Part shown: piece after piece, positions 2,706-43,526 of the stretch | Position numbering within the stretch: position 1 is the stretch's first letter | Layout of the letters: the number at the start of each line of letters is the position of its first letter | Source: Leidyana gryllorum EB-2025a | Lineage: Eukaryota; Protista; Apicomplexa | Reading direction: 5' to 3' | Length of the DNA stretch: 64,000 nt | Assembly (NCBI GenBank): GCA_048772705.1 | Contig: JBLWGC010000230.1 | Location: 806,001 to 870,000, forward strand | Made by a program: the position numbers and the translations under genes | Notes under the pieces: generated by a model | What the model was told of the DNA's origin: nothing | Database searches by the model: none | Seen by the model: the letters and a program-made list of their open reading frames with translations, nothing else

Positions 2706-4573
2706 ATGGCCACGGCCCACGAGCTTGGCATCTCTGAACAGGAGTTCCAGGATGCCATAAACCTCGAGCGCCTATATGCCCTCGTTTCCGATAGCGGAAA
2801 TCGATGTACCCGCTGTGGCCGCAAGGTGATTTCTTCATCGCTTAAACATCGCCCCCCAGGGAATAACCCATGTCGACAGAGAGAGCATCGACTTGTTGTG
2901 TGCTAACTGTGCGCGCGATCGCTCATCCGCGCGACGCATCGGGGAATGCCGCTTCCGTCGCAATGAGTTGGACAAGTTCGAAAAGAAACACGGCCGATCT
3001 AATCGTAGAAGGTATATATCGGTCTCACCCGACCCTTCACACTCGCAATACTGTCTCACAGAAGCGCCGAATCGCCTAAAGCTGTTCGAGCGAGTAATAA
3101 CGACAATCGACGATCACGTAGAAGAAATCGTCGGAGGTCTGAAACAGAATCAGAGTCCTCCGTTACCGAGGACCTCGCCAGTAAGTCTACAGTATCAAGC
3201 GGCTCGGATTCCTCCTCGTATCACAAGGGCAAAAGCCGCTCCAAAAAGTAAGCAATCCCCCTCTTACCTCAGATCTGCCCTTCCTATCGCCCCCGCCCCC
3301 TACCATCCACACACTCGACTGTGTGCGATGCTTCTCAATGCTTAGCCCCTTTCTTTGGTCCCCCCGCACTGCTGTCTCGCACACATACGCCTTTCGTCGC
3401 TTAGGCACTCGTCGAGTCGGAGGAAAAAGGACAAGCGGACGAGAGAGAAGCCGAAAAAGGCTGATCAGGGGTGGTTGGATGAAGAAACTGACTTTGCTCA
3501 GTCCTCGGTACCCGCCACGCCAGTGGCTGGGATGATGGGACTCATGGAAGACATTCAGCGGAAACAGCAACAGCAGCCCTGGGGCGGCGGTTTCGCCGCG
3601 GGCTCGCCCCAGGCCGTGATGGCAGGCGGCGGCGGTTGGGCGGGCGGTCCGTCGCAAACGCCGAGCGCCGAGTCGCTCCACAACCCGTTCGGGGGCGGTG
3701 GTATGGCAGCCTCGTCCCACTTTGCTGCTCCGCAGCAGAGACCCCAGTTTCCGTCTGGCATGCTCGGGTTTCAGCCCGCTGGCGCCGGAAACCCTTTTGG
3801 AGGTCGCTCACAAATGGGTCAGCAAGGCCAACTTCCGCCATCCTTTGCAAACTCGCTGGCGATGAATCGGCCACGGGCTAATTTCCCCCAGAGGCCCATG
3901 TCAGCTCCCGCCCAACAGAGAGGATTCCAGCCCTCTCAGTTTGGCGCCTTTGGACAGCGGATGCAGGGCACCTCCTATCCGCGCCCACAAATGCAACAGT
4001 TCCCCGGCTCCGGCATGCAGCCTCACCCATCGATGCTTCAGCAACAACAGCAACAATTCCCGCGATCTCCCAACTATCCGCCCCAGATGGCTCCCAATCG
4101 TCCAAGCGGCTTTGCCTACGGCGGACAGCAGCAGCACTACTCCTCCCCGATGCCAATGTCGATGATGGGCCCGCAAGCAGCTGCTGCCAGTTTTGGGAGG
4201 GTGCGAGGGGGTATGCGACCCGCCCCGGCGTTCGGGAGTCCCCCCGGAATGCAACAGCCACAACAGCATTTCAGACCGGCGGCTACGCAACAAAATCGGT
4301 GAGTCATCTATCTCTGTGTGTGGGAGAGATCGATCGCTCGCCCGACTGTACATTGACTGACGTTTCTGCAGATGGCAGTTTCAACAGCAGCAGCAACAGC
4401 AGCAGCCACCCATGAGACTACCGCCTGGACAACAACAACAACAACAACAACAGCAATACGAGTCTGGTGGTGGGTTCGACGGCAACCCGAATGTGCAATC
4501 AGCTCAGAGCGTAAGGTGTACAGGGACGGGTTGGATACATATTATGGATATGTGGCAGGATTGGTGGTCTTAA
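2706..4573 (+). CDS. C4 zinc-finger (degenerate ArfGAP-like) protein with a Q/G/P-rich, NPF/FG-containing tail
   Basis: Exons join as SGNRCTRCGRK|SIDLLCANCARDR. The downstream low-complexity region has two NPF motifs, FG dipeptides and polyQ. Stop TAA at 4571-4573. Confidence 0.55.
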
Positions 4574-4585
4574 AAATTTCGTTTC

Positions 4586-7500
4586 ATGGGAGCCAAGCGG
4601 AAGGGACCGATAGATGACAACGGGCCGGCAAGGAAAGAGCTAAAGGTCACACCCAAGGACACCAGGCCAGAGAAGAATCCTTCTACGTGGTTCGAGATTT
4701 ATGTTGACGTTCAAGACCCATCCATCGCTTTGATCAGTGATGGTGACCTTTTTTACAGAGCCTTTTGGGCCTTAGAAAAAACCCTCAAGCGATCGAGTAC
4801 AGGACGCCATGCCCATCTCAAGAAGGAGGACTCCACCTGCAACTCGTGCAAGGCGTTACTCGACCCCTCATTCTGGGACTTTCTTTTGGAAGCCTTTGCT
4901 ATAATTCCCGTTCAGGCGGTCGTCAGTGTATTGTCAGCCTTTGGAGTCGAGATCACCACATTGATCGCCGGCCGCACAAACGGGTGTGTGGAACCACTGG
5001 ATGAATCACCCACGGCCCCCTTACGCAGTAAACTGCGAAGCCTCTTAGTCACTCGCTTGGCAGAGGCCGTCCAGGATGAGACATATGCGTTGCCTCATAC
5101 GCACCGCGTGAAGATCATTGATCTACTCACACACGAGGTGTTCGTCGACGAGTTTGCCCGCTCGGTACCCATTCTGGTCACACTCACCGAGAGCTGCTCC
5201 GTCAGTGTGGAAGCACAAAAACGCATTCTCGCGTTCCTCGGCGGTGTTGGCGCAGCGACGGCGAAAGGTGCTGAATCCCTCGTCGTCGCCGGGGCAGAAG
5301 AGCTGTTGGATCTCGCCGGCGCGGTCGTAGAGTCCCGAACCCCCGCTGGCCGATGGGTCCACTGTGCCCAAGACGCCCTCCCAGAGGAGTTCCTACAAGT
5401 TGTCACCGAGTGTATCGTGTTGTCCGCGGGGAATCTAAAGGCGTTCCGTTTTATGTTGTCCTGTTGTTTGGCCCGAGCTGTGAGTTTGCTGACGGCGGCG
5501 TTGAAGCCTGGCCAGCCGGCCTCCAGAGTGTGCGAGAACGCCCTCTCCTTACTCCCGTGGCTCGACGAGACGCGGATGAAAAGGAAATTGGGAAAGCTCA
5601 ATCGCCTTTTGTTGGAATCGACCATTTGGCACCGTCTGAGCATTGCGGGAGCCCTCCGGATAACCGATAGAAAGGAGTTGGAGGACCGTTTCCGCAAATT
5701 CCTCAAGTCGTGTGATCACGAGATACTCAAATCCAAACTCGTCTCCTCCTCTTCTCCTCAAAAGGGGACCGCCGAGCGCGTTGACCTTTTGTTGAACTCT
5801 TTGACATTGGCACTCGATCAAATCCCGTCCGACTTTGACGCCTTAATGTTGCGGTTCGCTCCCCTCTGTCTCACCTACTCGACGACAGAGGACGTACGAG
5901 ACCGTTTGACTCGATTCTGGACGGTGTGTATGCTGGCGGCTCTGAAACTTAACGACGTCAAAGCCTTCTGGCAGAACGTCAATACTCTTCTGCGATCGCT
6001 GGACGGATCTGTGATCGATGAGAAAGATCGCTTTGTCTGTGATGACTCTAATCTCCTGAGTTCGATCCAAGATTTGGGCCGTAACACTATCGTTGGTGAA
6101 CTCGACATTGTGGCTGCGGAGCTGTCGAAACTTTTGAGAACGATCGTCTCATTACCTAAGAGTTTGCGTCACGGACTCTTACGGTTTGTGGGACATTATA
6201 TTCAAGGCGCCTATGTCGATGCCCATCGTCCGGTCCCCACCGCACTTCAAGACGATTGGCGGTCGTGTCTCAAATCCATTGCTGAGGACTTTACTCCACT
6301 CAAAGTGGTCACCACTGTTCCCGGGCAATCAAACACTCTGCTGTCGCTCCGAGTGACACAAGCGTGCGATCTCGGCGAGTTGGCGGCTCTGATTGCAGAG
6401 TACGCAGTCAAAGTTCGTATCAGTCGTGAAGGATTGGCCATGTCCACTGTGACCATTACCCCAAAACCATCTGAGCTTCTGCGTCCCCATATGCACCCGG
6501 ACGATGTTGGCTTGTTGGAGACTTGGATAACGATCATTGCTCGAGACAAAGTGTCAACTTATGCCGAGTTGCGCGCTCTCACAGCTCTCTGTGCGGTCCT
6601 CGAGAGACCCATAGACAGTCTGATTTCCCCCAACATTGACGACGCCATAATCGCTGACTCCACCTGGCCAGACGGTGTTGTGGAAGTGTGGGCCCGGCTC
6701 ACTTCCCTCAAACAATTGACGCGTTGCATTGTCAAAACGGCTGCCAACACTCCCAATAAAGTCCCCAATCTGTTCAATCAAATCCTAATGGCCTTCGGGT
6801 TCGTCGAAGCTCGAGTTGTCAGACTCGTGGAGGCTCTGCTGAAAACGTGCACTCGACTTCTGACAATGAGTAAAGATTTGGCGGCTGTAAAAGTGGCGTC
6901 AGTTATTGTGCGGTCAGTGCAATCCGCACCGTTCCTCCACACTGTGATCGGCGCCCAGGAGCTCGCCGAGGCCGTCATCACGGTGTTGGACGAGAACGCG
7001 ACTGAGACACAACCCCAAGACATGGAGGACATTATCGATGGACTCGCGAGTGTTGCCGAATTGCCGAACCTCAAAGCTGAGGTGATCAATGAGGACACTT
7101 TCTCCCGTCTGATATCCAATCTCGTCGTGATGTGTCCCGAGACCCAACTGAAACCGTTGTGGAACGTTCTGCGATTACTGTTCCAAATCGGCGAATGGAC
7201 CCCCAAAATGCGAAACGGCCTCCGCGATAAAATGTTAGAAGACTTTGCTGTACTGTGTGATCACGACGACAGTGGCGATAACTGGGCTGAGAACCGCTTG
7301 CGACTACTCGAACTCTCCTCGAAATCGATCCTCCGAGTTGACGCAGACGACGATGAGGCGCCTGCGGCGGAACCAACAACAGCGGCTGTCCCAACGTCGA
7401 CCGCGACGGCGGAGGAAGCTGAGGATGATGAGGGAGCGCCAGAGATGGGCGATGGAGAAGAGAGCGTGATGGATATTGGTGGAGGTGCAGCAGCAGAACC

Positions 7501-25232: not shown

Positions 25233-25699
25233 ATGACTGCACATGTCATGAAGGAAGTCTTTAGTCTTTTCGATAAGGATGCCGATGGCTTCATTGCCGG
25301 AATGGACCTGCCGATGGTCATAAGAGCGACCGGAGTGAACCCCTCTGATGCGGAGTTGAACAAGCTTCTGGCCGGAAAGGAGCACGAAGCGTTCGACTAT
25401 GCCCATTTTGCGGCGATATGTGGCCCTCTGCTCGAAGGGCGCGATATTCGAGCTGAAATGCAAAAGTCCTTCAAGCCCTTTGACCGTGATGGTTCGGGAG
25501 AGCTCTCCAGTGGTGAGTGTGTGATGGTCGGTCGGTCGGTCGGTCATATTCAGCGTGTTTAGGCGAACTCAAACATGTGATGAGGAATCTCAAGACTCAT
25601 TTGTCAGACGAGCAAATTGACCGTCTCATAGATTGTGCGGACCCCAATCGCACTGGCAAGATTGCTTACAATAGTCTAATTGACATGTTGCTGTCTTGA
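25233..25699 (+). CDS. Calmodulin-like / myosin light chain-like EF-hand protein
   Basis: KEVFSLFDKDADGFI..IRATGVNPSDAEL..FKPFDRDGSGELSS|GELKHVMRNL..ADPNRTGKIAY. Confidence 0.9.
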
Positions 25700-25795
25700 G
25701 AATACTACTTGGCTCCAAATGTTGCCCTGCTTGCCCTTAACTCAACTCCCTGCCTAAAGAACTCATTTCTCCGCACCTTCCTGCTTTTTTGTCTT

Positions 25796-27206
25796 ATGGG
25801 CACGCCGCGCGTCTTAAGTAGGCTCAAAAGCCGGCTGACCCGTAAACCAATTGAACACCCCACCTCCCGGTCATTGCCACCATCGACTCCACCTCCACCA
25901 CTTGAGACTCCTTTCGTCACTTCGGACTCTGAAAAGCAATTGTAAGTCCAGGGGCACCACGCATTCCAACACACTCCATCACAGATGTCCACCGTATGAA
26001 GACTTTGGCGCTGATGCATCTGCCTTGTTCAATCTGGACATTATAGAAGGCTGCCGCCTTGTCCTCACCTCACACTTTGGACGGGACTCGACCAAACCGG
26101 AGAACCCGGTTGGTCCTCTGGGCGAAAGCATCTTGTCTTACACCCTGAACCTTGGCACCTACCCCAAAGTTGGCAGCCAGGCGGACATCCTGCGAGCTCT
26201 GCTTCATCCGAATGCCAATGATGGGACAGATGGCTCCTCTAAGGGTGGCTCTACGTGGTCCACTCTCTTCCGTTGGGGGAGCTCCGGCGGCAAAGCCTCG
26301 CTTCTCGCTCGATATGCTTCGCGGACTGGCTTCGTTGACGGGAGAGCTGTGTGGAAGATGTGTGACTCCGTCACCATAAGGGGAAGTATGGTGTCACCCA
26401 CCTTTTTCACACATATGGGAGGGTTGCTGCGTTCTGCCTACCGGCCATGGGCTTTGAAACAGGCGATCAAAGAACTCGATTTCTCAAATGACATGGGATC
26501 TTTGGTTCTCGAACGTCACACCGAGGAGTCTAATCTCACTGCGCAAGTATCTTACCAAGATACACCGGTGTACAAGTTTGCGTATGCAAACTATCTCACT
26601 CGTCGACTCAATCTGGGAGGTGATCTGACGATTCTGGTATGTCGTCATGCCTTAACTGTTGATTGACTGTGTGCTCTCTCAGGGATCGAGTGGTGCGGTT
26701 TTGACCTCCTACGGGTTTCGGTGGTTGCAGGGGCAGAGTGCGGTAGCTGCGGCCGTTAGCTCGGGGCCTAACTTTGCTAAATCAATGGCCGAAGGACTCA
26801 AGGAGCGCGTTTATGGCTTGCGAGCATCTTATGTAAACAAGGTCAGACACGCTCTTATATGCTGCACGTGCTCGTATATTTCGCTTTCCGTTGCAGCTGA
26901 CTGATCGAATAGCGGTCAGTGGCGAAGTAGAAGCGCCTTTGTCGGATTTGAAGCGGACTGTTGGACGTCTGGTAAGGCGTTTGATACTGCTAATCAGCAG
27001 TACACACGTGTGTTTGGTAGGGGTATGAAGTGCAGTTTACACAAGCGAGGGTGATGGGGTGCTTGGATACCGATCTTAAACTACAAACCACTGTTGAAGA
27101 TATTGCAGGTTTGCAGTTGTCTGGTGAAATGGATTTCTCGCACGATAACTACAAGTTTGGGTTTGGATTCGAGTTGGTGCCCCAGAGGCGCTCTACCGAG
27201 AACTGA
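25796..27206 (+). CDS. TOM40: Mitochondrial outer-membrane import channel TOM40 (eukaryotic porin family)
   Basis: PPYEDFGADASALFNLDIIEGCRL, YANYLTRRLNLGGDL, GYEVQFTQARVMGCLDT; C-terminal beta-signal GEMDFSHDNYKFGFGFEL. Confidence 0.85.
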
Positions 27207-27256: not shown

Positions 27257-30200
27257 ATGTCAGCCTACAAACTCCCATTCATAAAGAGCCTTGCCACAAA
27301 GTTCATCGAAGCTGGTACACGATGTGTTGCTGTAATCCATGCGCCTAATTCGGCGCCAGCATCATCAGCGCGGATTCAGGGGGCTGTTAATCAGACTGCT
27401 ACTACAGGGTCGAACAACGAAGAAGCTGGCCACTATGGACAGCCACCTCAACTTCGAACGGAGTACATTCGTTTTCGGTCGCCTGGTGGTCCACTGCTCC
27501 TGAATCATATACTCATAGTGCCGTCCGGGGCCACGATGTTGAACGGGACGATTGTTGGACAGACGAATCCGCTTCCTTCGCGATGCCGACTGGAGGCTTG
27601 GGCTTCGAATGCATTGACTGCAATGGTGGCACCTGACGATACAAACGCGCAGTTACGAGATGCTCTGATAGCTGCTGGCGAATTCCATCCTTTGCGTGAG
27701 TTGAATATTCGCGGCGATCAACTGACCTTGTGTTTGTCTCGTCAGAATTATCCGAGGGGAGTATTCCCGATTCTGTGGTCCTCGTACCGTGTTTGCAGAC
27801 ATTGGAGAAGGAGGCAGAGGCGATGGGTCAGCGTTTGACCGAGTTTCCCACACTGTTGTTGGCCGACTCTATAGTGATTCGAGGAGTGTTTGAGAAACTG
27901 ACGATTTGCGTCTTCGGAACCGAGATTCCGGAAGGGCCCAAGTACGCCATCGCAGCCGACAGGTGAGCCAAATGGATGGTTAAACAAATATCGACACCCC
28001 TATTCTGAATAACAGATTATGGGCTGCGCATCTAAGCGACGCCAAAGCTAAGCTGTTGTCTGGTGAACGGGAGCAGATGGCTCCATCGTTGCTGGGAATG
28101 GAGTACGCGCCCGAGGCCGACCCGCTACCAGAAGTCAATCCAGACAAATACATACGCGAATTCCTACAAGTTCCTGCCACCTCACCGACCCCTCCCACCG
28201 ACAAGAATACGGCAGGAGGCCGATTAGAAGACACTGGCTCGAGCGGGCAGCAGTCACAACTCCCATCCAATAGTTTCGACCCTATCGGCGAAGTACTCGT
28301 TGGGTTCAATGCCCTCAAGTCGGAAGGTTTCTCTGTATTGACGGTGGCTTTGGGCAAAGCCTTCGAAGTTGAGAACGTGGATTGGGGGAGTCCGGCCTTT
28401 GATCGTTACAGAGACGATATGGTGGAATTTGGAAAATGGGCTGTGCTCCCCGCTTATGTGGAGTACTCCAAAAGTGCCCAGACCTCCTCATCGAAATCGT
28501 CGTCCACGACCGAAACAAATAAAGTCAAATCAGTGGGAGTAGAGAAGACTTCTGCAACTCGTGTGGTTCGTCTATTCGACTTTGAAGCTGCTCAGAGCAA
28601 CGAAGCCACGTCCTCGTCTGCCAATAACAAAGATACGTCTAACGCAGCTCCTGCTGCCCCCAGTCAACGCAGAGCGGATGCTGCTGATTTCCCTCGCCAC
28701 GAAGCCCTCAGTACCTACTGGTCTGTGCCCCTGCAGAACCATGTGGCACTCTTGGATCTGATAACACGTTGGTGTGTGACTGATGAGCGAGCTCAATTTC
28801 TAGCTGCCGAGGGTGGCCTGGCTTTGTTGATGACGGTGGCTCTCAGAACGGAAGTTATCAACTTCAGACAATTAAAGGTGAGCGCGCCACACGCTGTGCG
28901 GCATATTGTCGTGTGTGTTGCGACACCGCACGCTCATCGGCGCTCGCAGTAGTCCACGCGCCCGGCTTTGATCTAATCAGTCGTTGTTGCAGATATCGAT
29001 ATTCACCCTACTGCACCGTATGGTTAGTCTAAGTCCTACAACGACCTTGTCGGAGAGCGTTAGAGAAGGACTTCACGAAGTGGCCGTGTCCGTGAGCAAT
29101 AGGGCGTCCCCTCCCGGTCCGGGAGAAGGTCGTCCATGGAGTGAGGAATTCCAAGAAGCTTTGAATGCAATACTGCGTGCTGCGCTGTTGACGTCAGCTG
29201 TGAACGAACTGTCGGAGATTGTTACCTCGAACCAAACCCGTGCCGAGTTACCTCCAGTTGATCAGCTGTTGAAGATCCGTCAAGGCATCACAATACTGGA
29301 AGCACTGATTGAGAAGCAACGACAAGGGGCAGAGGAGTGTTTGGATACAGCGCTGGGTACACGTTTGGAGCGAGGAAGGTTGGGCGGCAGAGGCTTATGC
29401 AGCCCGTTCCAAGTGTCACCACTTCTAGCCAGCCTTTTCAGAGCCAGCGACCTCCCTAATGACTTGTGTGCTTTAGTGGCCTCTCACCACCACGAAGAAG
29501 ACAGTTCATCACCCCCACTCGACCAGTCAGAACACAAGGAGCTTTGGTCAAATATAGCTTTGGAAGTCATTCAATTTATCCGGCTGCTGATCTTTGATGT
29601 GATCGGAGGTGCCGATTTCGTTTCTCAACGATCCATCTACGATCTTCTTCGGGCATATCGATGGGCCACTCCGGCTTCTTCACTGATCGACACGGACGAG
29701 CTCTTGATCTTCTTCTGTCTCCGGCATCACAATCTGCAAGGTCTGGCACTGGAAAAACACGAGGACTATTGGCGTACTCTCCGTTTGCTTTCAAGCCTTC
29801 CACAAGCTGCTCGGGCCTTTTCTGCGCACATAGCCACCGATCCCCAATGGACCGAAGCTCTCTTGGACAACATCGCCAAATTGGCTGACTCTAATCTTGG
29901 TCAAAGCGAGCGTCTTGTGACTCCGACGGCGTGTCTCGCGCTCGTATGCTCGTTATTGGAGTCCACCTCCACATCTGTGCATACCATACTGTGGCACACT
30001 CTGAGCCGCTTGAGCCCTCAGATTTTGAAGGCTCTACAGCTGACTGGAGAGCTTCAGTCACGAGCGGGAGTCAAGTGTTCAGAAGTGCCTGGACTCACCA
30101 AGAACTTGAGAGGATTTGGACAATATGTCCAGATGGTGGCGTCCGATCACAGTATACACGCCTTACTGAGCGTTCTTCACGAGTGAGTTAACGATCATTT

Positions 30201-33200
30201 CCCCCTCCGCAGCTCATCAGTCATTTGCTTCAGAATGCTCTCCCAACGGCAGTTGTTGCTGAACACCAACGTGCCGCCCGCGATTCTGAAAGCCGCGGGA
30301 TTGATTGACTCGTTGGAGACTGGTCGTCGCGCTAACGACATGGCGGTGGTAATGGGAGGATTTGAGCCCTCTAATGGAGTGGTTCTGCCAGAAGTCTTTC
30401 GGAACGTCACTCGGGCAGAAGAAGTGGGGAAGATTCGGGGAACCCTACTGATTGAGGAAGAGGAGGACCGCGTTCCCACAAGTGTTGTCCTGGTTTGCTT
30501 ATGGCGAGGTCTGCAGTTCTGTTTGAACCTCATCAAAGCTGCCCGGTACAATGCTGGACGCGTGTTGGTGCCGATTGGGGCTGCTGACGAGGGAGCAGAC
30601 GACCCTTTGGGTCTGACTCTGAACTACCTGAATGAGCAATGTAACTCGATGATGGTGGAGGTAGCTGTGAAGGGTATGATGTTGGTAACCCGCGAAATCG
30701 TCAGCAGCGATTGGGAGCTCGTTGAGGAGGTGGAGAACATTGTTTCCGGTGCCAATAGAGAAGGCAAACTGACCCATCCGCTGTGTCTCCAGGCCGCTCG
30801 TTGTTGTGTGCGAGTATTGAGTGAGTTGTTGTTTGCGGACGGTGGGTCTTCGTCTTCTTCTCCGTCGCACCACAAGCTGACGGCAGAGGCTCTTCCGTTG
30901 TCGTCGGGGTATCCTGGGCCTAAGGCAACGGCGGGAGGATTGAATCCGAATGCTTCGAGTGCGAATGCGACTATCCCCGGGCCGAATGGCACTGCGGCGG
31001 CGTCTGCAGGGAGTATGGGCGCCACACGTCACTTCGGCCACATCAGTCCCCACCGAACTGTGGTCAATGTGAGGCTTTTCAGAACTTTGATGGCAACACT
31101 CCATCGATTAAGTATAGCAATGAACATGGCGAAGACCGTTAAAGAGAACGAGAAGGTTCAGGAGTTGTATAGAGAGGTTATGGGCTTGATACAATTGTGG
31201 CACACCCGGGGTGATGAGCTAACAAAGCGGTGGATGTTGAAGGAAGTTCTGAACAATGCGCGCGGCATAGCGCCTCTTCAGTTGGTTGGGCTGCATGTTC
31301 TCGAAGCTTTGGGGCTCCGAGCGTTTGGAATGCTCAAACAAAGCATCAGCGGTCTCAACTTTAGTGTGGTGCGGGCGTCTCACCCGCCCCCCTTGTTGCC
31401 GCTCCATCTGTCATCTTATAACTTGGCAGCATTGGAAGCGACTCTCGACACTGCATTCTTTTCGACCACTGTCACATTGTCAGCGCCGAGCGAAGTGACA
31501 GAACTGAGCAGTGTGTTTCCGAGTCTGTTGAAGGTCAATGGCGTCAGTCCCGGTGCTCCCGAGAACCGAGCTTACATTTGCTGTCACATACCGAGTGCCA
31601 ACTTTGCCGCCACAGACAATAGGCACATCTGTCTCACGGCCAATCTACGGGAACCTTTTTCGGTGGCAGTCTTCCCCACTATAGACAACGGGTCTGTCAG
31701 CATGGAGCCCAAGGGGGACGAGCCCGCTTGGGACGCTGTTTTCGACAAACTCACCAAGAAGGTCCGAGATCACGTCAATATACATCAATGGGTGAGTGAG
31801 AGTTGGCAGCGTGACGACATTGTCTCATTTCCCTTTCGCAGAAACTGATCCAAGCCACGACACTGGAATTCGATGTTTTGGTGGACTTTCTCCATAGACT
31901 CGTCATTGGCATCACTGACAGTCGCAGCCCTCTCTACAGTGCTTCGATGGCGGTGTTGGTTCCGGCTTTGGTGGACGCTGAACTGCCCTTCCTCCAGTTG
32001 GTGGCAGAGAGGTTCACAATGTTGGCAGAAAGAGCTCTCGAGAAGGCACTTCAGACTGAAGAAGCTTCTTCAGCCACCGTCGCCGAAGCCACAAACGATC
32101 TTTTGGCCGTATTGGGACGCCTCAATAAGACTGCTTACTTCCTTTCCTTAACTCCGAGGCTCCTTGGCCCCTTATTCGCCTCCCAACCGGACGCTGTGTG
32201 GTGTGGCACCATCCTCAAGGCCTTAGCCCGAGGTCTCCAGCACATCGATCGGCGAGCCACCGATGGCTCACTCACCAGTGTGGAACATCTGCGCTTACCC
32301 GACTGCCGTGACGGTCTCTTCGCCACACTCAAATGTTTGACGCTTCTCTATCGATCGTTGCTACAAGCGATCCAGGATCAACGACAGATGGCCAACGCCT
32401 TTACCCTTCTGAGCGTTACGCGGAACATTCTCATCGGTATACTGCGCTTCACACACGTTCTTTGCTGCACGTGCGAAGTCAGCGATCTCTCAGAAGAGGC
32501 GCTCAGAGCGTTCAACGAAGTGTTACAACTCATCCAAGAGTGTCTCAAGTGTCCCTTTGTCAAACAGCTGATGGCTCTTGACATGACAGAAGAGGTCATC
32601 GACTGCGTGTCGCAAGCCATCTTTGCGGACGTGATGCCGTCAGAGTCCTCCAAACCAATAGTTGCCACTTTCAGTTCCGTCGGATCGATCGAAAGACTGA
32701 TCAAAACGATCATTGCGTTCGGGAAACAAACCGATCTCTCCCAAGACAAGCGACAATTGGCCTACGGGCTTCTGGAACTCGTTGTCGGAACACTGAGAGA
32801 ACTTGCCAACCACAGCCGAGAGCTCCCAGCCATATTCATCTCCAATCTGCTGCTGGGCTTCGATACGATCCACACCAAATCCAAATCGGCCCAGGCAGCA
32901 ATGACGGGAGCCGATCTACTGGCCGATGGAGGCTCCAACACCTTGGAGGGCGGGGGATCACGAGGGCTCGGAGAAGACATTCTGGCATTCGAGAGCGAAC
33001 TCAAACCTCTTATTTCCAATTACGCTGACCCGGAGACCCGGTCGACACTTTTATCCACTCTGGAAGATGTCCTCAGTGTTCTCGCCAGCAAAGTGCGCTC
33101 GATCGGTGCACAAGAGTTGGAGCACGCGCAAACGGTAAGCAGCGGCCGGTAATTTAGTCTCCCAAATGTCACCTCTCCTCCAGAATGTTCCCACATACCT

Positions 33201-34412
33201 CCTTTGGGTACCACCGAATGGACACTCACGTCCTCTGGAAGTCTATGGGGGATTGACTCGGGAGAAACTAGTCGAGCTGTTCACGGTCAACCGGAACGTC
33301 GCCCTCCCGAGTGTAACACTCCACGTTCCCGTCCTCAACGAAGAAGACAAAGAGAACGCGTGGCTCGAGAATCCGGTTGCCATCCGGCGACTCAACCAGG
33401 TGAGAGAGAAACTTCAGTGTCTGAGCTCCGTGTGACGCCTCATTGTTCCCTGTCTCTCGTCAGCCTCCCATCAAAGTGCCCACTCTGCTCGGCCAAGAAA
33501 GTCTGCCTCTTCGGATAGAGATGGAGAACTACGAGGACGCCGAAGCAGTTGCAGCGGGAGAAACTCGTCAAAAGCGGAGTGTTTCGGCCAAAGCCGCACG
33601 CTACGCCATGAATGATCCCAACGCCCAGCAACAGGAAGAAGCACAGACCCCGTCGGTCGCAGGCTCCGCTGTGTCGAACGCTCCCCAATTCCATCCCATT
33701 CCTCAGCTTCCGCCTTCGGTGGTCGACAGAGGACCGCCAGCAGCACCTGGAGCCAACATCATGGATGATTGGGGCGCCTTCACCTCACAGGCTGCGGTTC
33801 TGACCCGCCCGCCACCACAAATGATGCCCCAACATGGAATGCCGCCCAATCAGGGGATGCCAGGGATGCCACCTCAGAACATGCCCCCCCCTCAGATGCA
33901 TCAACAGCCACCACCAATGGGACAGGGACCACCTCCAGGAATGTTGCCACCTCCCTCCATGGGAGGCAACCATCATCCGCCCCAAGGACCCAGACCCGGC
34001 ATGTACGGAATGGCTCCAGAGATGAACAACCAACCCGGAATGGTTGATATGAGGGGACAGCCTCCATCCGGCATGGCTGGTCCGCCTGGAATCGCTGGTC
34101 CACCTGGAATGACCGGGCCGCCGGGTATGGGGGGCCCTGGTGGGGCTGGTCCTACTCAAGATCAGTTTGGACAACTGATGGCTATCCCCGAGTTCCGCGA
34201 GTTCCTCCACGCTGGAGAACGCGTTGGCCTGAATGTGCTCGAATGCTTCCGAGTAAGCAATCCCCTGTCTGTTCGGTCGTACACACAGCTCTCTCTTTTT
34301 TCAGAACCCTGCTTTGCTCCACGATCCTGACAGGAAACAGAAGTTCATTGGACTTCTCACCAGCCACCCGGCCATTTCTGGACTCTTCCAGTCCCTTGGT
34401 TTCAATATTTGA
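27257..34412 (+). CDS. VIR: Virilizer/VIRMA homologue (m6A writer scaffold subunit)
   Basis: N-terminal VIR_N-like motifs EYIRFRSP..LLLNHILIVPSG..VGQTNP..RLEAWASN..ADSIVIRGVFEKLTICVFG; a long helical (ARM-like) body of about 2000 aa; a Pro/Gly/Met-rich tail; a final helical segment FRNPALLHDPDRKQKFIGLLTSHPAISGLFQSLG resembling the plant VIR C-terminus. Confidence 0.78.
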
Positions 34413-34419
34413 AAAGAGA

Positions 34420-35732
34420 ATGAATCCTAGCGATAGTCTGCGCCGATTCGTCGCTCAAGCTGTGTGCCAGCTTCTTATGTGTACCGATTATTGTGACAAC
34501 AGATCACCCATAACTCAAACATCATTTCGACCCACTTGGAAACGATTTGAAGACCTTACACGAGGTCAGCTCAGAAGTTGTGTGCTCGTGTGTGTGTACT
34601 GTGCAGGTTGACTCAGTGTTTCTGCTCTGTGACCAACTGCTGCAGTTGGCTGATCAGAATGAGACTGTGCCGTTGCGGGGACTATACTACCGAGTTGCCA
34701 ACTTATTCAAAGTAAGACACACACGTGTGGGCGAAGATGGCTCGGAAACAATGTGTATAGGGTCAAGCCCAGTGCAATGCAATGCTGTCCAGTAAGTTAT
34801 TCATACGGAAGAGGTGATGAAGATCGATTATCCGAGCAGAAATCTTGTCAGCGGCGGGGTGTAGGTCTCGTGAGCAACTTGGGGTGATGGCAGCTGCCCG
34901 CGGCTTAGTGTGTGGAGCGATAGTGTTGGAGAACAGGAACTCCGGGTCTGCCTTAGAAAGTCAGGAGGTGCTGATTGATCATCATCTGGCGACGGTAGCC
35001 CGAATTTCGTTGTCAGCGTGTGCCAAGCCTGTGATACTGGTCGTAGAGAAAGTGACTATCTTCCGTGTGCTCCGCAGCGCTTTGCATCAGGCGAATCTGC
35101 TGAACAGTATTGTCGTAGTCTCAGGTAGCGGTCAGCCGGATTTGGCCACACGGCAATTCCTCCATCGACTGCACACCACTTATAGTGAGGCCATCTTTGC
35201 CTACTTGGGGGACTGGGATCCCCACGGACTCATGATTTACCTCACCTACCGGGACGGACCAATGAGACAGGGCCATGTCCTGGGTGCGGACGAAATAGGT
35301 GAGCGACTGGACTATATGCGTGCGAGCAATGTACCCATTCACGCAGGGTTGTCTCGGCTTGAATGGTTGGGACTGCAGTACGTGGATTTGGTGGAGGCGG
35401 AGACAATCGCCTGGCTGCAATTGACAGAAAGAGACCTTCAGCTGCTCCAAACCATCAGTCGGCGATGTGATAGCCTCGGGCAGAGCAAGCAGCAGCAGAC
35501 ACAAGAGGACGACGAAGGATATGAATTCACTTTCCAACACTCGCGCAAGCGAGTTTACGCCTTGGAGGAGTGGACAGCGCCAGACTGGGCTGGGAATGTG
35601 ACTAAAGAGTGCAACATGATGACGGAGACGCGGCGAAAATGTGAGTTGGAAGCTGTGAGCACTGAGTGGTTGGTCGAAAAGGTGAGGTCCATGATGCCAG
35701 CGGTGAGGAAGGTGCGAAAGTTTTTGGCATAA
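34420..35732 (+). CDS. SPO11: Meiotic recombination protein SPO11 / topoisomerase VI subunit A family
   Basis: Spliced: KRFEDLTRVFLLCDQLLQLADQNETVPLRGLYY (catalytic Tyr), FKGQAQCNAMLSKI..REQLGVMAAARGLV, TOPRIM ILVVEK, GQPDLATRQFL, GDWDPHG (DxD), LEWLGL, KCELEAV. Confidence 0.93.
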
Positions 35733-35733
35733 A

Positions 35734-38503
35734 ATGCTGAATGGGCCGCCTGGAGGAGGAGGGAATGGAGCTTCGTCTTGCCGAGTGACACACTTTCAAC
35801 TCAAGCGTGAACGAGTTGTGGAGGTGTCCCGATTGATTGCCTCTCTCTTTAGTCATGGTCGAAGTGCTAATGACGAAACACCTCCGGGAGAAGGTCTGAA
35901 GGAGCTGGTGGGCGAGTTGGTGGAGATAAACGCGCTGGGGGGCAAGAACGAGGACGGGAAAGTCCCATGGAGCGTGAAAGACCGGGCGTATCGAAGCTGT
36001 TCGAATGATAGGAGAGTACAAGAAGCTTTGTTAGCCTTCTTCATTTTGCGGTCCATTGAACTTGAGCTTCAACAGACTGCCATAGAGGGGCCGCCGCCTC
36101 AGAAGAAACGTCGTGTGGAGCGAAATCCTTTGTTCCGATTGCCGTGCTCTGAAGCAGCATTAGGATCTTATTTCCATCGGTTCTGCCTTGAACTATTCTC
36201 AGTCAAGGTTTTGCCGGGGGTCTCAATCGTCGACTTAATAGACAGGGCACTGCCAACTACCGATCAGCAAAGACTGAACAGATTTCAATTGCCTCCCAGC
36301 TTTGTTCACGAGTTTCAGGCTCGTATCAATGTTGGTCTTATACTCACTCAGTGGGAGCGGAAGCGTCTGGTCATCCTGCATCGCCCAACACAACACACTG
36401 GCGACGAACATCTTGGCATTGTCCTCACCTCTGTCTCAAGACCTGGACTGACACAGCTTCTAACGCAAGCCCTAAGTGAAGTCGCCGGTGCTGTTCAACG
36501 TCCCATCGCCAGTCCAGCTGTCTCCATCTTCCATACCACCGATGCGAGACCAACCGCTCCGGTGGCGCCGGGTGCTTCAACTGTACCCCAACCCACGGGG
36601 CCTGTTCCACCTCCCCCACCCCCTCCGCCGGACGGAATGGCGATGGGGGCGCCCGGAGCGACAGGTGATCTGGCGACAGCCACCGCGAACGCAACAAACT
36701 CCGCCATGATTCGTAAATGTCTCGAAGCCGCTACTGTAGCTGAGGTAAGCTCTACAAGGTGTGACTGTAAGCGTGAGGGAGACGCCCACACACGTGTGTG
36801 CCGCAGCGATTCGTGCACCGCACCGCAGAGCTCGGTGTTTCCCTCAACTTGTGTGTATCTGCTTCGTAATAGGGAGAGTGGATGTACATTTTGACCCGTC
36901 GCAGACCCTACAGGGCAAGATAGCTATGACCGCGCTACAAGATACTCGAGACGACAAAGTTGAGAGCGACCTCGGTGATGACTCACCGGGTGAAAGTATG
37001 AGTCTGAAGACAATATTAGTATCGCCAACGGTGGGGGACTTATTAACACGCACACAGTTGATACCTTCACGGATTGACCATCGATTCGGTCTGTTACGGT
37101 ATTGTTCCTTTCCTAATCGTGATGCGTGTACGGCTTCGAGAAGATGTCGGAACGTTCACTATCGTAAACTGATTCAGGGGCACACAGGTGAGAAAAGTTG
37201 TTGATGAGAAGTTCAGACGGATTTGTGGCAGATCTCTCATTGGGTGACTGTTCCTACCTGGACACATGTCGCCATATATTCAGCTGCAAGTTTGTGCATT
37301 ATGCTGTGGATTTGACTCCCGAAGAGCGTAGTGTGGTGGTCAATAATCCATTGTTCCGTCACCGGGCTGTGTTGTTGAATCAGTTTGACGTATTGGAACG
37401 ATCAAGAGACAGGTACGGTTGATTGATTTGTGTGATAGATTCCAGGTGGTGTATGAGAGTGTTATCTGCCTCTCTTTCTCTTTCTTTGTCTCTCTCCCTG
37501 TCGACGTGCTATGAGTGGTTTCTGTTTTCAGTTTACGCCTTTTGTCGTTACCGACGTCTGACGACGAGTCTGCGCCCGTTGAGGAGCAAGTTGAGTCTTG
37601 GTTCGAGGAAGGGGTGATACGAACGCTGGATAAAAATCCGGTGCCTCCTCAGTGGATTCGTTGTGATATGCGGTGGGTTTGTTGTTGCTTTGTCTTAAGA
37701 ACACTCGTTTCGGGGAGCAGATCTTTGGATTTGGGGATCTTCAAGGGAGTGGTATCGGTGGTGATGGCCGATCCGCCTTGGGATATTCGGATGGACTTGC
37801 CGTATGGAACGATGACAGACAATGAGATGCGTAATTTGAGGGTGGATTTGATCCAAGACGAGGGTCTGCTATTTCTGTGGGTGACTGGTAGAGCGATGGA
37901 GATAGCTCGAGACTGCATGGCGGCGTGGGGTTATCGAAGAGTAGATGAGTTGGTGTGGGTGAAAACCAATCACCTTCATCGAATTATCCGGACAGGAAGA
38001 ACAGGTCATTGGCTGAATCATTCCAAGGTAGGACTGATTCTGAAGAAACTGTGTGTCACAGCTCTTTTTAGGAACACTGTTTGATTGGCATCAAGGGTAA
38101 TCCGAACATCAACAGGAACGTTGATTGCGATGTGATTGTGAGCGAAGTCCGTGAAACCAGTCGGAAGCCCGATGAGATATACCGCCTCATCGAGCGAATG
38201 TGTCCAGATGGTCTGAAACTGGAACTATTTGGCCGTCAGCATAATCTGCGCCAAAACTGGATCACACTCGGCAACCAATTGGACGGAGTTAGTCTCCAAA
38301 CCCCTCAGCTCATCAAGGCCTTCAAGCAACACAAGAAGGGAATGCGTCAAGTGCGAGCAGAGGAAGCCCAGAGACTTGCAGCAGCGGAAGCAAAGAAGGG
38401 CAATGCAACATCTCAGCAGCTCTTACATCCAGCAAGCGCCGTCGGCATGCCTTCCTACTCCAGCACACCAGCCCTCACACCCATAGCGGAATTGGGAGCT
38501 TAG
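35734..38503 (+). CDS. METTL3: mRNA N6-adenosine methyltransferase catalytic subunit (MT-A70 / METTL3 / IME4)
   Basis: Two CCCH fingers (YCSFPNRDAC..CRNVHY; GDCSYLDTCRH..CKFVHY), PPQWIRCDMR, VVMADPPWDI (DPPW), [55 protein letters not shown]. Confidence 0.97.
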
Positions 38504-40111: not shown

Positions 40112-40769
40112 TCACATCGAAACGTAGGTTTTGAGGATTTTGATATCATGGCGAGGCCTGAAATGTCCATTATAATTCAATTCGAGCCATGCGACGCATA
40201 CCTTTCGTTTCGGCTTGTTTGAGCCATCCCGATCTTGGCCACAACGTCCATACCAGACTTGACACGGCCAAATATGGTATGTTTACCATCCAAGTCGAGG
40301 GTCGGGGCCAAAGTTATGAAGAATTGAGATCCATTCGTGTTGGGTTTCCCAGTGTTGGCCATACTCAGTATACCAGCCCCCACATGCTTTAGGCCAGGAT
40401 GGATCTCATCCTCCATGAACTTCCCATATATGGACTGACCGCCGGTCCCGGTGCCAGTGGGGTCTCCGCCTTGAATCACGAAGCCCTGAGAATTGAGATG
40501 GAATTGAGGGGGAGGGGGTGTCATTACGTACCGGGACGACTCTGTGAAAGATGGAGTTCTCATAGTACTTCCGGCGCACCAGCTCGTAGAAGTTTCTGCA
40601 GGTCTATAGAGAGAGAGAAGTTAGTTTAGCCTTTGTCACTGCTGCTCACCTTTGGGGCGTGGGCCCAATATAATTCGAGGACAATGGTGCCAATGGTGGT
40701 CTGCAGGGCTACATCCCCTTGCTCATCAGGGTTGATGACGATACCAGCTTCAGACTGGACCAGTGACAT
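40112..40769 (-). CDS. PPIL1: Cyclophilin-type peptidyl-prolyl isomerase, PPIL1-like
   Basis: [86 protein letters not shown]. Confidence 0.93.
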
Positions 40770-40805: not shown

Positions 40806-43526
40806 ATGTCAGTCACTCCTCGACGCGCATTGGCGGAGATCAAGACCGCTGCTGATAAGAAGAGTAGGTGTTGAGGCCCGATCTCCAATTGCTTGCAGCT
40901 CGACGAACACGGATCCGTAACTTGACGGAAGTCAAGGCGAATCATCTCGTAGCCAAACAAGATGAACTGGAGGCCGCAGGGGCCACACTTCCGAAGGAAG
41001 TCCTCGACATAGCGGCTGTGGACGCTCCACCTCCACCAGCAACAGAGCGGCCCAGACGTCGTCGACAGGGATTGTCACAAGCCCATCCGTCGACAGCTGC
41101 TCAGTCGCAGCCGGTAGACGGCCCGCCAACTCGCACGCGCACTACAAAGAGCTCCGCGAAAGCCTCAGCCGCGAAAGCCAAAGCCACATCACAAAAAGGT
41201 ACCAAGCGAGCGGGAAGTAAGGTACCCAAACCGGTCAGCGCATCTCAACCGTAAGTTACGCAACTCTCTGTACGGCCATTGAGCTGCCGCTCCTCCGACA
41301 GATCCATTCCTGAGGAAGAATTTCTCAGCTGCGTCGATCCGGATTCGAAGCCGGCCAGCTGCACTGGATCTGTGCCCCAATCTCCTGTGAACAAAGTCGA
41401 AGTCATTCCCGCCCAAGGCGAAGATCTCTCCGCTCCTGATGGCCTCTTCGCGACATCTCGAGTCCCAGGCGCGTCTCCCCTTCCTCCAACGTCGAAAGGG
41501 CCGCTGACAACGGCGCTTCTCGAGGGTATCATCACAGAGCAGTCCACCATGGAGCACGAAGAGATCCCTCTGCCATCTCAAGACAGTGCACCCCCCTTCC
41601 TGTGGCCCGGATTTGGAGACCCCCCACCTCCCACCCCGCCGCCGGTGGAGTCTCGGGTCATTGAGACTTTGGTACAGCCCATATCGCCAATAGCCCAGAA
41701 GTCCAGGTCTCCCTGTTTCGGTTATGTGTCCCCCAGTGGTCCTCTAACGTCTGATTCGTCGCCTGCCGATGCGCGAGGTACAATAGCGGAGCCCTGTTCG
41801 TCGGGACCGGAAGAGTGTCTGCCACCGCCTCCGGCGGACTCTCCGGTCCCTCCACAGCCCCAGCAGCAGCCGCAGCCGCCTCAGCAGCCGCAGCCGAGCA
41901 ACGCTTCTCGACCAACGACAGCTACGAATGTCCGTTTGGTCTTTGAAAGCCGAGCTGCTGTGCCCATCGAGAGCTACAAACCACCGGAGATCTTCCGTTC
42001 GAGTGCACCGAAACCGCCAACGCGGCGCGACTCTGAGACGTTGCCTCCCTATATACCCCCAGCGTATCTGATGTCTCTCGAACCCATGTCTCCATCGCGA
42101 TATCCGATGAAGTGTTGTGACTTCGAAGAGCCGGGGAATGGAGACAGCTCCCCAGGGGATGTAATCGACTTGCTGGCGTCTCCGGAGCCGGAGCGGGAGT
42201 ATGAGGAAGAAAGCTCGGAGGGCGACTCACCCATTCGGTTGGTGCCGATGGACGAACAGGCGCGTGTGCGTCAGCGCGCAGCGGAAGCCGCAGCTTCTCG
42301 GACTGCTGCAGCGGGGTCCACTCCGACTCGGTACAATCCATTCGTGACAGATTTTACGTCGTGTTTACGGACACCAACTCGCGGGGGCGGACAACAGACA
42401 CCGGTGAAGACAGTTCCGGCTCTGACTCCTTCGAAACAGCCCGTGTGTTTCGGGGCTGTGACGCCTCCGCGGCGGACGAATGAAGACGGATTGGACGCGA
42501 ATGACGAGAACGAATCATTTTCAGCGAGACGAGATGTCCGGGATGTGACTGGGACCACCAAAACTATCACACCGACAGCAAAGACTGTACCTCCCCCCCC
42601 GAGTGCGACACCGACCCGAAGACGTCAAATGGTGAAGCCGACGTGCAAAGATCTGTTCCCTGACCCGCCAGAGACAGAGTTGCGACCTCGCGAACGGCAA
42701 CGAAAGGCAGAGTATTACTATAATCTGTTCAATCGTGAAGTCTTTGACGATAAGTTGCCCCACTATTTACCGTTGGTGTGGAACGCTCGGCTCCGAAAAA
42801 CCGCAGGGCAGGCAGTATTCGCGCGGTCCGGCAATACCAATAAGGAATCACGAAGTCATGATCCCGATGATGACGAGGAGGAACTTATCACAATGGTTCA
42901 GAATCTCACACTGAATGCTGACGGCAAAAGTGGACAGAGTTCTATGGTTCCCAAACGAATAGAATTGGCCCCGAAGATACTCGTGACCGAAGAAAGACTG
43001 GCCGCTACCCTTCTGCACGAATGTTGTCATATTGCACAGAGAACTTTAGAGGTAGCGATCGATCCTCCGCACGGTCCAATATTCAAGAGATGGGCCGCCA
43101 AAGCTTCGAGACGGTTCCCTCAATACAAAGTTTCCACTCGGCACGACTATGAAATCCATCAGCCTCATCAATGGAAATGTCTCAAATGCGGACTCGTATA
43201 CAAACGTTTCAGTAGATCTATCAACGTTGATAAACATCGGTGTGGTACTCAAAACTGTGGCGGATGCCTCGTTTATCTCGGCGAATTTCTCACCAGTGGT
43301 ATCCTTAAACCGCCTAATATGCGCCAACTCACTCCTTATAATGACTTTGTTCGCGTAAGTCGAACCGGCTACTGGGCCACACACACACACAAACATAATC
43401 TCTCTTTAGGCTATGTATGACAAAGCGGTAGCTACAGCTGAGGACCCTCGAGACGTAATGACTATCATTGGCCGCTGGTGGAGGGAACGGCAGCGAGAAG
43501 AAGAGGACGGCGAGAGTGTTTTATGA
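40806..43526 (+). CDS. GCNA: GCNA/ACRC-like SprT metalloprotease (disordered region + SprT + Zn ribbon + HMG box)
   Basis: Long disordered N-terminus; YYNLFNREVFDDKLP..WNARLRKTAG..IELAPKI..TLLHECCH (HExxH)..PHGPIFKRWA..HDYEI..WKCLKCG..CGTQNCGG; then an HMG-like LTPYNDFVR..VMTIIGRWW. Confidence 0.87.

Follow-up and report, generated by a model that had tools for sequence, protein, structure and literature searches.

A probable VIRMA gene, SPO11 and METTL3 stand side by side in gregarine genomes, probably neighbours by chance that overlapping transcription units keep together

Introduction

The apicomplexan N6-methyladenosine (m6A) writer is described from Toxoplasma (METTL3, METTL14, WTAP and VIRMA, the last TGGT1_226660) and from Plasmodium falciparum (PF3D7_0729500 and PF3D7_1366300). 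Here we examine a locus of the gregarine Leidyana gryllorum EB-2025a in which the genes for METTL3 and for a probable divergent VIRMA (Virilizer) flank the meiotic gene SPO11. The locus lies in a stretch of 64,000 nucleotides (nt) of contig JBLWGC010000230.1 (assembly GCA_048772705.1, positions 806,001 to 870,000 of the forward strand), which we call the window and from whose first base all coordinates are counted. The same set of writer subunits is found in this genome, VIRMA is too divergent for plain Pfam scans in both systems, and the plant-like CPSF4-YTH reader is present. In contrast, the P. falciparum genes for METTL3, VIRMA and two SPO11 proteins are, going by their IDs, spread over four chromosomes and are not neighbours as they are here.

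Three further systems bear comparison. In Toxoplasma and plants, CPSF4-YTH-dependent 3'-end formation guards layouts in which a constitutive gene lies upstream of a repressed, stage-specific one (PMC8313237), and this reader is encoded here as well; read-through in Toxoplasma is, however, a knock-down defect with no regulated switch shown, and our literature search found no case involving SPO11 or the writer's own genes. The polycistrons of Cryptosporidium parvum (PMC12246861) also arise from co-oriented genes with tiny gaps in a compact, related genome, but they join genes of unrelated function and were established from long reads, whereas the RNA data used here (run X1, below) argue against an obligatory message of all three genes. 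In budding yeast, the methyltransferase complex (Ime4, Mum2, Vir1, Kar4 and Slz1) is needed for meiosis (PMC10393049), and IME4 is controlled by the antisense RNA RME2 (PMC3857879). Orthologues of METTL3 and VIRMA are tied to meiosis in that organism, and the regulatory layer in the IME4 coding region offers a precedent for an island described below, but the yeast link to meiosis is functional, not positional. The IME4 element reportedly lies at about +225 to +675 of the gene. In microsporidia and nucleomorphs, promoters and untranslated regions (UTRs) fall within the coding sequence of adjacent genes, and the order of genes changes unusually little. The gregarine genome differs from these in being intron-rich and 15.5 megabases in size (53% GC), and its overlaps are predicted ones.

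An earlier note on this DNA had proposed an operon-like, co-regulated meiosis and m6A module. We find that the arrangement is real and, as far as a literature search for adjacent SPO11 and METTL3 genes shows, undescribed. Its best explanation, and in our judgment probably the right one, is that the genes became neighbours by chance and were then held together by overlapping transcription units.

Three co-oriented genes in a tightly packed genome

All three genes run on the forward strand: the VIRMA-like gene (27257..34412, nine exons, 2,227 amino acids), SPO11 (34420..35732, five exons, 371 amino acids) and METTL3 (35734..38503, six exons, 784 amino acids). Exon arithmetic confirmed the order and the gaps of 7 and 1 nt, at the coordinates originally claimed for them. 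The first spacer (34413..34419) measures 13 nt in L006 and 34 nt in L009, two contigs of other gregarines (from ERR10900114 and SRR31860986, respectively). At the second junction (35730..35736, comprising the SPO11 stop, one base and the METTL3 start), two A's of the stop codon serve also as the A-rich context of the METTL3 start. This 1-nt junction is identical in L006, yet the gap is 6 nt in L009, so that it varies among species and a fixed stop-start translational coupling of SPO11 to METTL3 is ruled out.

The identities of SPO11 and METTL3, as the earlier note gave them, are firm by profile matches and catalytic motifs. Profile searches were run exon by exon, the joined coding sequences serving only for frame checks and gene-finder training. 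SPO11 (exons 34420-34564, 34617-34711, 34761-34791, 34840-35298 and 35347-35732, with a TAA stop) matches TP6A_N on exon 2 (expect value, E, 0.002) and Toprim (E 1e-20), with the catalytic Tyr at 34679, the Toprim Glu at 35037 and the DxD motif at 35208. We found one copy in the genome, compared with two in Plasmodium and Cryptosporidium, and it evolves fast (49-74% identity to L006 by exon). Its Toprim motif at 35124-35141 carries two substitutions relative to the usual GKGYPD and differs again in L006 and L009. METTL3 (exons 35734-36744, 36905-37187, 37232-37412, 37532-37672, 37721-38027 and 38072-38503, with a TAG stop) matches MT-A70 (E 5e-29 and 4e-18), has two CCCH-type zinc-finger motifs upstream of DPPW at 37770, and has a separate METTL14-like paralogue on contig C213, as expected of its class; scans of prokaryote and viral collections returned no match to it.

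The spacing in itself carries no signal, being the short end of the genome's norm. As had been cautioned at the outset, tight gaps are general in the window: 14 of 45 other neighbour gaps are at most 50 nt, counted over the window and 22 kilobases (kb) of C213 with rough gene models from a gene finder trained partly on the trio. Head-to-head starts lie only 18-36 nt apart at 40769/40806 (a pair confirmed by eye), 46218/46240 and 60907/60926 in the window and near 43110-43132 on C213, so close that each promoter must fall within the coding part of the opposite gene. In this genome, promoters and UTRs that overlap the coding sequence of adjacent genes are presumably the rule.

The large upstream gene is very probably a divergent VIRMA

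By exon-phase arithmetic, the first gene is open from its ATG at 27257 through to the TGA that ends at 34412, and it is interrupted by eight GT-AG introns. It had been described as a VIR_N-bearing protein of about 2,000 amino acids. That domain is unmatched on the gene's own exons: HMMER found no Pfam VIR_N in exon 1 or 2 of the window, nor did a six-frame scan. The identification as VIRMA nevertheless holds up as probable, through homologues and fold.

Searching with exon 1 recovered six eukaryotic relatives, including a 1,906-residue protein of Gregarina sp. Poly1 that aligns to the gene at its start, middle and end, a match that points to a gregarine origin of the window. Two homologues match VIR_N weakly at the same profile positions, 99-126 (E 0.06 and 0.25-0.3; the best score is 13 bits at E 0.064, below the curated cut-off of 27.7 bits). 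A profile built from four homologues is matched by both exon 1 and exon 2 (E 1e-19 and 6e-12), and the exon 2 segment is the part that matches VIR_N 99-126 in the homologues. The VIR_N-like N-terminal domain (27257..27962, split by a 38-nt intron at 27761-27798) is modelled as a jelly-roll of the F5/8-APC10 type, with structural matches at Z 5-6. It is followed by a long helical repeat body and by conserved C-terminal motifs around a Pro/Gly/Met-rich tract. The middle region is modelled as a helical solenoid at low confidence (mean predicted local distance difference test score 47). Against that low-confidence model, human VIRMA 7vf2_A ranks third of 48,161 chains (Z 11.0, root-mean-square deviation, rmsd, 7.8), with an alignment of 431 residues over VIRMA 880-1488 that is by far the longest of all, and VIRMA 7yg4_A scores Z 10.7-11.6 at rmsd 4.6-4.8. 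The second VIRMA entry ranks sixth, and both entries are tied with generic HEAT repeats.

These scores leave room for the gene to be some other jelly-roll plus HEAT-repeat protein, which would remove the two-subunit pattern altogether. The lack of a VIR_N match in the window would agree with this, as would a blank sequence search of the PDB and VIRMA Z-scores that are tied with or below those of SF3B1 and TOG repeats, on two models that are both of low confidence. The ESM Atlas was likewise blank for this protein, and a full-length search with the Gregarina homologue returned only itself. However, the two homologues match VIR_N at identical profile positions, the long alignment to human VIRMA falls in the corresponding part of the protein, and size and domain order follow the VIRMA pattern of a beta-sandwich and then a helical-repeat body in about 1,800-2,200 amino acids. 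Toxoplasma VIRMA is equally invisible to ordinary domain scans, having no annotated domain and being recognised by HHpred alone (PMC8354455). On the weak VIR_N matches in two homologues, the jelly-roll N-terminus and the helical body aligning to human VIRMA, we consider the large gene very probably a divergent VIRMA and a different identity unlikely.

The order is old among gregarines, as are its unrelated surroundings

VIRMA, SPO11 and METTL3 occur in the same order on L006 and L009. In L006 the proteins are 77% (VIRMA), about 55% (SPO11) and above 90% (METTL3) identical to those of the window, the spacers are 13 and 1 nt, and the downstream genes are the same. In L009, where VIRMA is about 35-60% identical by segment, the spacers are 34 and 6 nt and SPO11 is intact with extra introns; three upstream genes of the window are kept with one swap, and the downstream gene differs. 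The linkage is thus present in relatives, but unrelated neighbours are kept along with it. The trio is old within the gregarine clade, yet background microsynteny is high at the distances compared.

Outside this clade we found no such linkage. SPO11 was not near METTL3 in any of 80 other eukaryotic loci (26 of them at least 8 kb long), a scan in which L006 and L009 served as positive controls and the VIRMA query was too insensitive to count, and a metagenome scan found no gregarine (best match 76% identity). The trio linkage is absent in Plasmodium. Going by the gene IDs, we take P. falciparum METTL3 to lie on chromosome 7, VIRMA on 13, and the two SPO11 genes on 12 and 10. The IDs themselves are published (PMC12905994, PMC8354455, PMC9261774), and the dispersal fits the wider finding that apicomplexan lineages have generally lost synteny with one another (PMC3176833). 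A partial check of C. parvum placed one SPO11 between an RmlC-like protein and an amino acid transporter, and the other between two uncharacterised proteins. As a side observation, the ID of P. falciparum TopoVIB (PF3D7_1365600), the partner of SPO11, stands only seven places from that of VIRMA (PF3D7_1366300), probably by chance.

Neither the writer complex nor the meiotic toolkit is clustered in the gregarine genome. METTL14 is found on C213, flanked by eIF2A-like and RPL35A-like genes; WTAP is about 650 kb away, with an ARF-like gene on one side and mitochondrial HSP70 on the other; CPSF4-YTH (CCCH fingers plus YTH) on contig C208 (L095 1486-2649, minus strand) is accompanied elsewhere in the genome by RAD51/DMC1-like genes on C2 and a HORMA gene on C104. 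CPSF4-YTH is listed as absent from C. parvum in a review (PMC9778586).

The proposal that two subunits flanking SPO11 are unlikely to have met by chance fares unevenly. For the writer complex itself, the chance that two of its four or five subunits lie at most two gene places apart is 0.3-0.7% (6,000-8,700 genes), in line with the proposal; over the thousands of co-complex pairs in a genome, whose counts we assumed, 2-13 such pairs are expected by chance. The low figure for this one complex favours selection for linkage of the two writer subunits, through a shared chromatin domain or co-expression, with SPO11 as a passenger. The order kept in three genomes would fit, as would, weakly, the similar depth of both subunits in X1 contigs. 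We nonetheless think such selection quite improbable: neither METTL14 nor WTAP, the direct partners of this pair, is linked to it, VIRMA and METTL3 are themselves unlinked in Plasmodium, and co-oriented genes with another gene between them share no promoter. With unrelated neighbours conserved, spacers varying, the other writer and meiotic genes dispersed and Plasmodium without linkage, an operon or co-regulated meiosis module is unsupported. Nor does the yeast role in meiosis carry over as had been supposed, the Toxoplasma writer being essential in asexual stages (PMC8354455).

RNA of a relative covers the flanking genes

X1, the one run found, is a shallow run of a relative, available to us as contigs and compared at an 80% identity threshold. 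Although it was listed as DNA, we take it to be RNA of a close gregarine relative because its contigs skip four predicted introns: 33400-33463 in VIRMA and the last three of METTL3. Spliced pieces of VIRMA and METTL3 appear at depth 3-8, and no contig falls on 33985-35755, which includes SPO11 and both junctions. The presence of VIRMA and METTL3 RNA without SPO11 speaks against the earlier expectation that the trio is co-expressed, as far as a single shallow run can. The pattern is suggestive of housekeeping flanks around a stage-limited SPO11 and not of an obligatory three-gene message. One deeper X1 contig matches the conserved core of METTL3 only and probably comes from the host or another organism.

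A true polycistron over two or three of the genes, in which re-initiation or leaky scanning would allow translation of SPO11 or METTL3, would suit the spacers of 7 and 1 nt and the identical 1-nt junction of L006, and such transcripts exist in C. parvum, involving about 10% of Cryptosporidium genes (PMC12246861). We regard it as very unlikely here. SPO11 RNA is missing from X1 where both flanks are present, the L009 spacers are 34 and 6 nt, and head-to-head pairs in this genome are equally tight, so that short gaps are no sign of co-transcription.

Probably a chance neighbourhood, locked in place by overlapping transcription units

We favour a model in which three separately transcribed genes met by chance in a gregarine ancestor and then persisted inside a larger microsyntenic block. 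Because the genome is so compact, the VIRMA 3' UTR would run over the SPO11 start and the SPO11 promoter would sit inside the VIRMA 3' end; likewise, the METTL3 promoter and 5' UTR would lie inside the last SPO11 exon, and the SPO11 3' UTR inside the first exon of METTL3. Breaking either junction would then harm a gene, and this could fix the gene order with no shared regulation involved. As housekeeping writer subunits, VIRMA and METTL3 would be expressed in feeding stages, and SPO11 would presumably be switched on only around meiosis. The three unrelated upstream genes kept in the distant L009 and the downstream genes kept in L006 support this model, as do spacers that differ among the three genomes (7/1, 13/1 and 34/6 nt).

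Several observations weigh against it. Between the window and L009, both trio junctions are intact while four other ordered junctions changed, in two events. The low chance figure for the writer complex itself stands, and the second gene after METTL3 is a GCNA-like germline gene. The gap in X1 also extends over 390 nt at the end of VIRMA, which must be part of the transcript, and SPO11 is expected to be 75-88% identical in the X1 organism, near the 80% threshold. Finally, the model alone does not explain an island in METTL3 exon 1 whose synonymous sites have hardly changed and which suggests that a non-coding signal overlaps the zone where SPO11 and METTL3 meet.

Even as frozen chance, the locus gives the first look that we found at a gregarine m6A writer set (a VIRMA candidate, METTL3, METTL14, WTAP and CPSF4-YTH), and a clean example of a meiotic gene without room for a promoter or UTRs between two housekeeping genes.

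An island in METTL3 exon 1 nearly free of synonymous change

The island spans about 370 nt (35995..36370, +260 to +635 from the METTL3 ATG). Against L006, 100 of its 110 codons are identical, compared with 504 of 1,154 elsewhere (44%, near saturation; Fisher p 2e-23), with four genes serving as controls for synonymous change. Its score exceeds all 5,000 shuffles, the best of which reached 77. The X1 sequence has four listed differences from the window in 35995-36330, of 26 across a 601-nt contig (eight of the 26 are unlisted and are probably at the ends of that contig). In L009 the gene order is retained but the island is not.

Several explanations were tried and rejected. Stable RNA structure is not indicated (z above -1.5 in all windows, no compensatory pairs), a second reading frame and codon bias are ruled out, the genome holds no second copy or inverted partner, and no strong cryptic splice sites were found. 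No Rfam family matched. The island lies where the SPO11 3' UTR must run, and it most likely represents an overlapping cis-element that serves either the formation of SPO11 3' ends or self-regulation of METTL3; introgression or a mutation cold spot is the alternative.

One use of such an element would be m6A-gated read-through, in which CPSF4-YTH would read m6A marks and terminate the VIRMA transcript within SPO11, and that of SPO11 within METTL3 exon 1. The island would then hold the latter site and could shorten the METTL3 message at high m6A levels, which would feed back on the writer and also place SPO11 under stage control. A protein with CCCH fingers plus YTH is encoded in the genome, loss of Toxoplasma METTL3 or CPSF4 leads to read-through into repressed stage-specific neighbours (PMC8313237, PMC8354455), and the island, at 260-635 nt beyond the SPO11 stop, contains six of the 15 DRACH motifs in the exon. 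That density is, however, about what length predicts, L009 has kept the order but not the island, the X1 contig runs unbroken across it, and the CPSF4-YTH mechanism is genome-wide, with no need for these particular neighbours. We hold this gating to be unlikely. The fuller version, in which the trio is a selected gregarine circuit whose m6A-dependent 3' ends at the island and at the VIRMA end let the writer sense its own activity and gate SPO11 mRNA at meiotic entry, seems to us improbable. If the island were an m6A-dependent cleavage or feedback element, METTL3 would be a self-regulating gene, and m6A 3'-end control would be linked directly to meiotic entry in Apicomplexa.

Neighbouring genes and minor observations

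The GCNA-like gene (40806-43420, forward strand) encodes a long disordered N-terminus, an SprT domain with HExxH (E 5e-16) and a zinc ribbon, followed in the list of its features by the beginning of an HMG-like box; no such gene was found within 2 kb of METTL3 in L009. Upstream of VIRMA, an EF-hand gene and a TOM40/porin-like gene are swapped between the window (25248-27206) and L009 (2161-3814). The EF-hand gene also adjoins VIRMA on a further contig, L010, which ends before SPO11, and because it does so in both L009 and L010, the window order of these two genes looks derived.

In L006, from the sister species, degenerate telomere-like repeats of the TAGGGTT type follow directly after the METTL3 stop (6175-6270); they are not present in the window. 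The palindrome CACGTG recurs in introns of neighbouring genes, at 26865, 27005, 34722 and 36791 in the window and at 4394 and 5048 in L006, possibly as a promoter or splicing motif.

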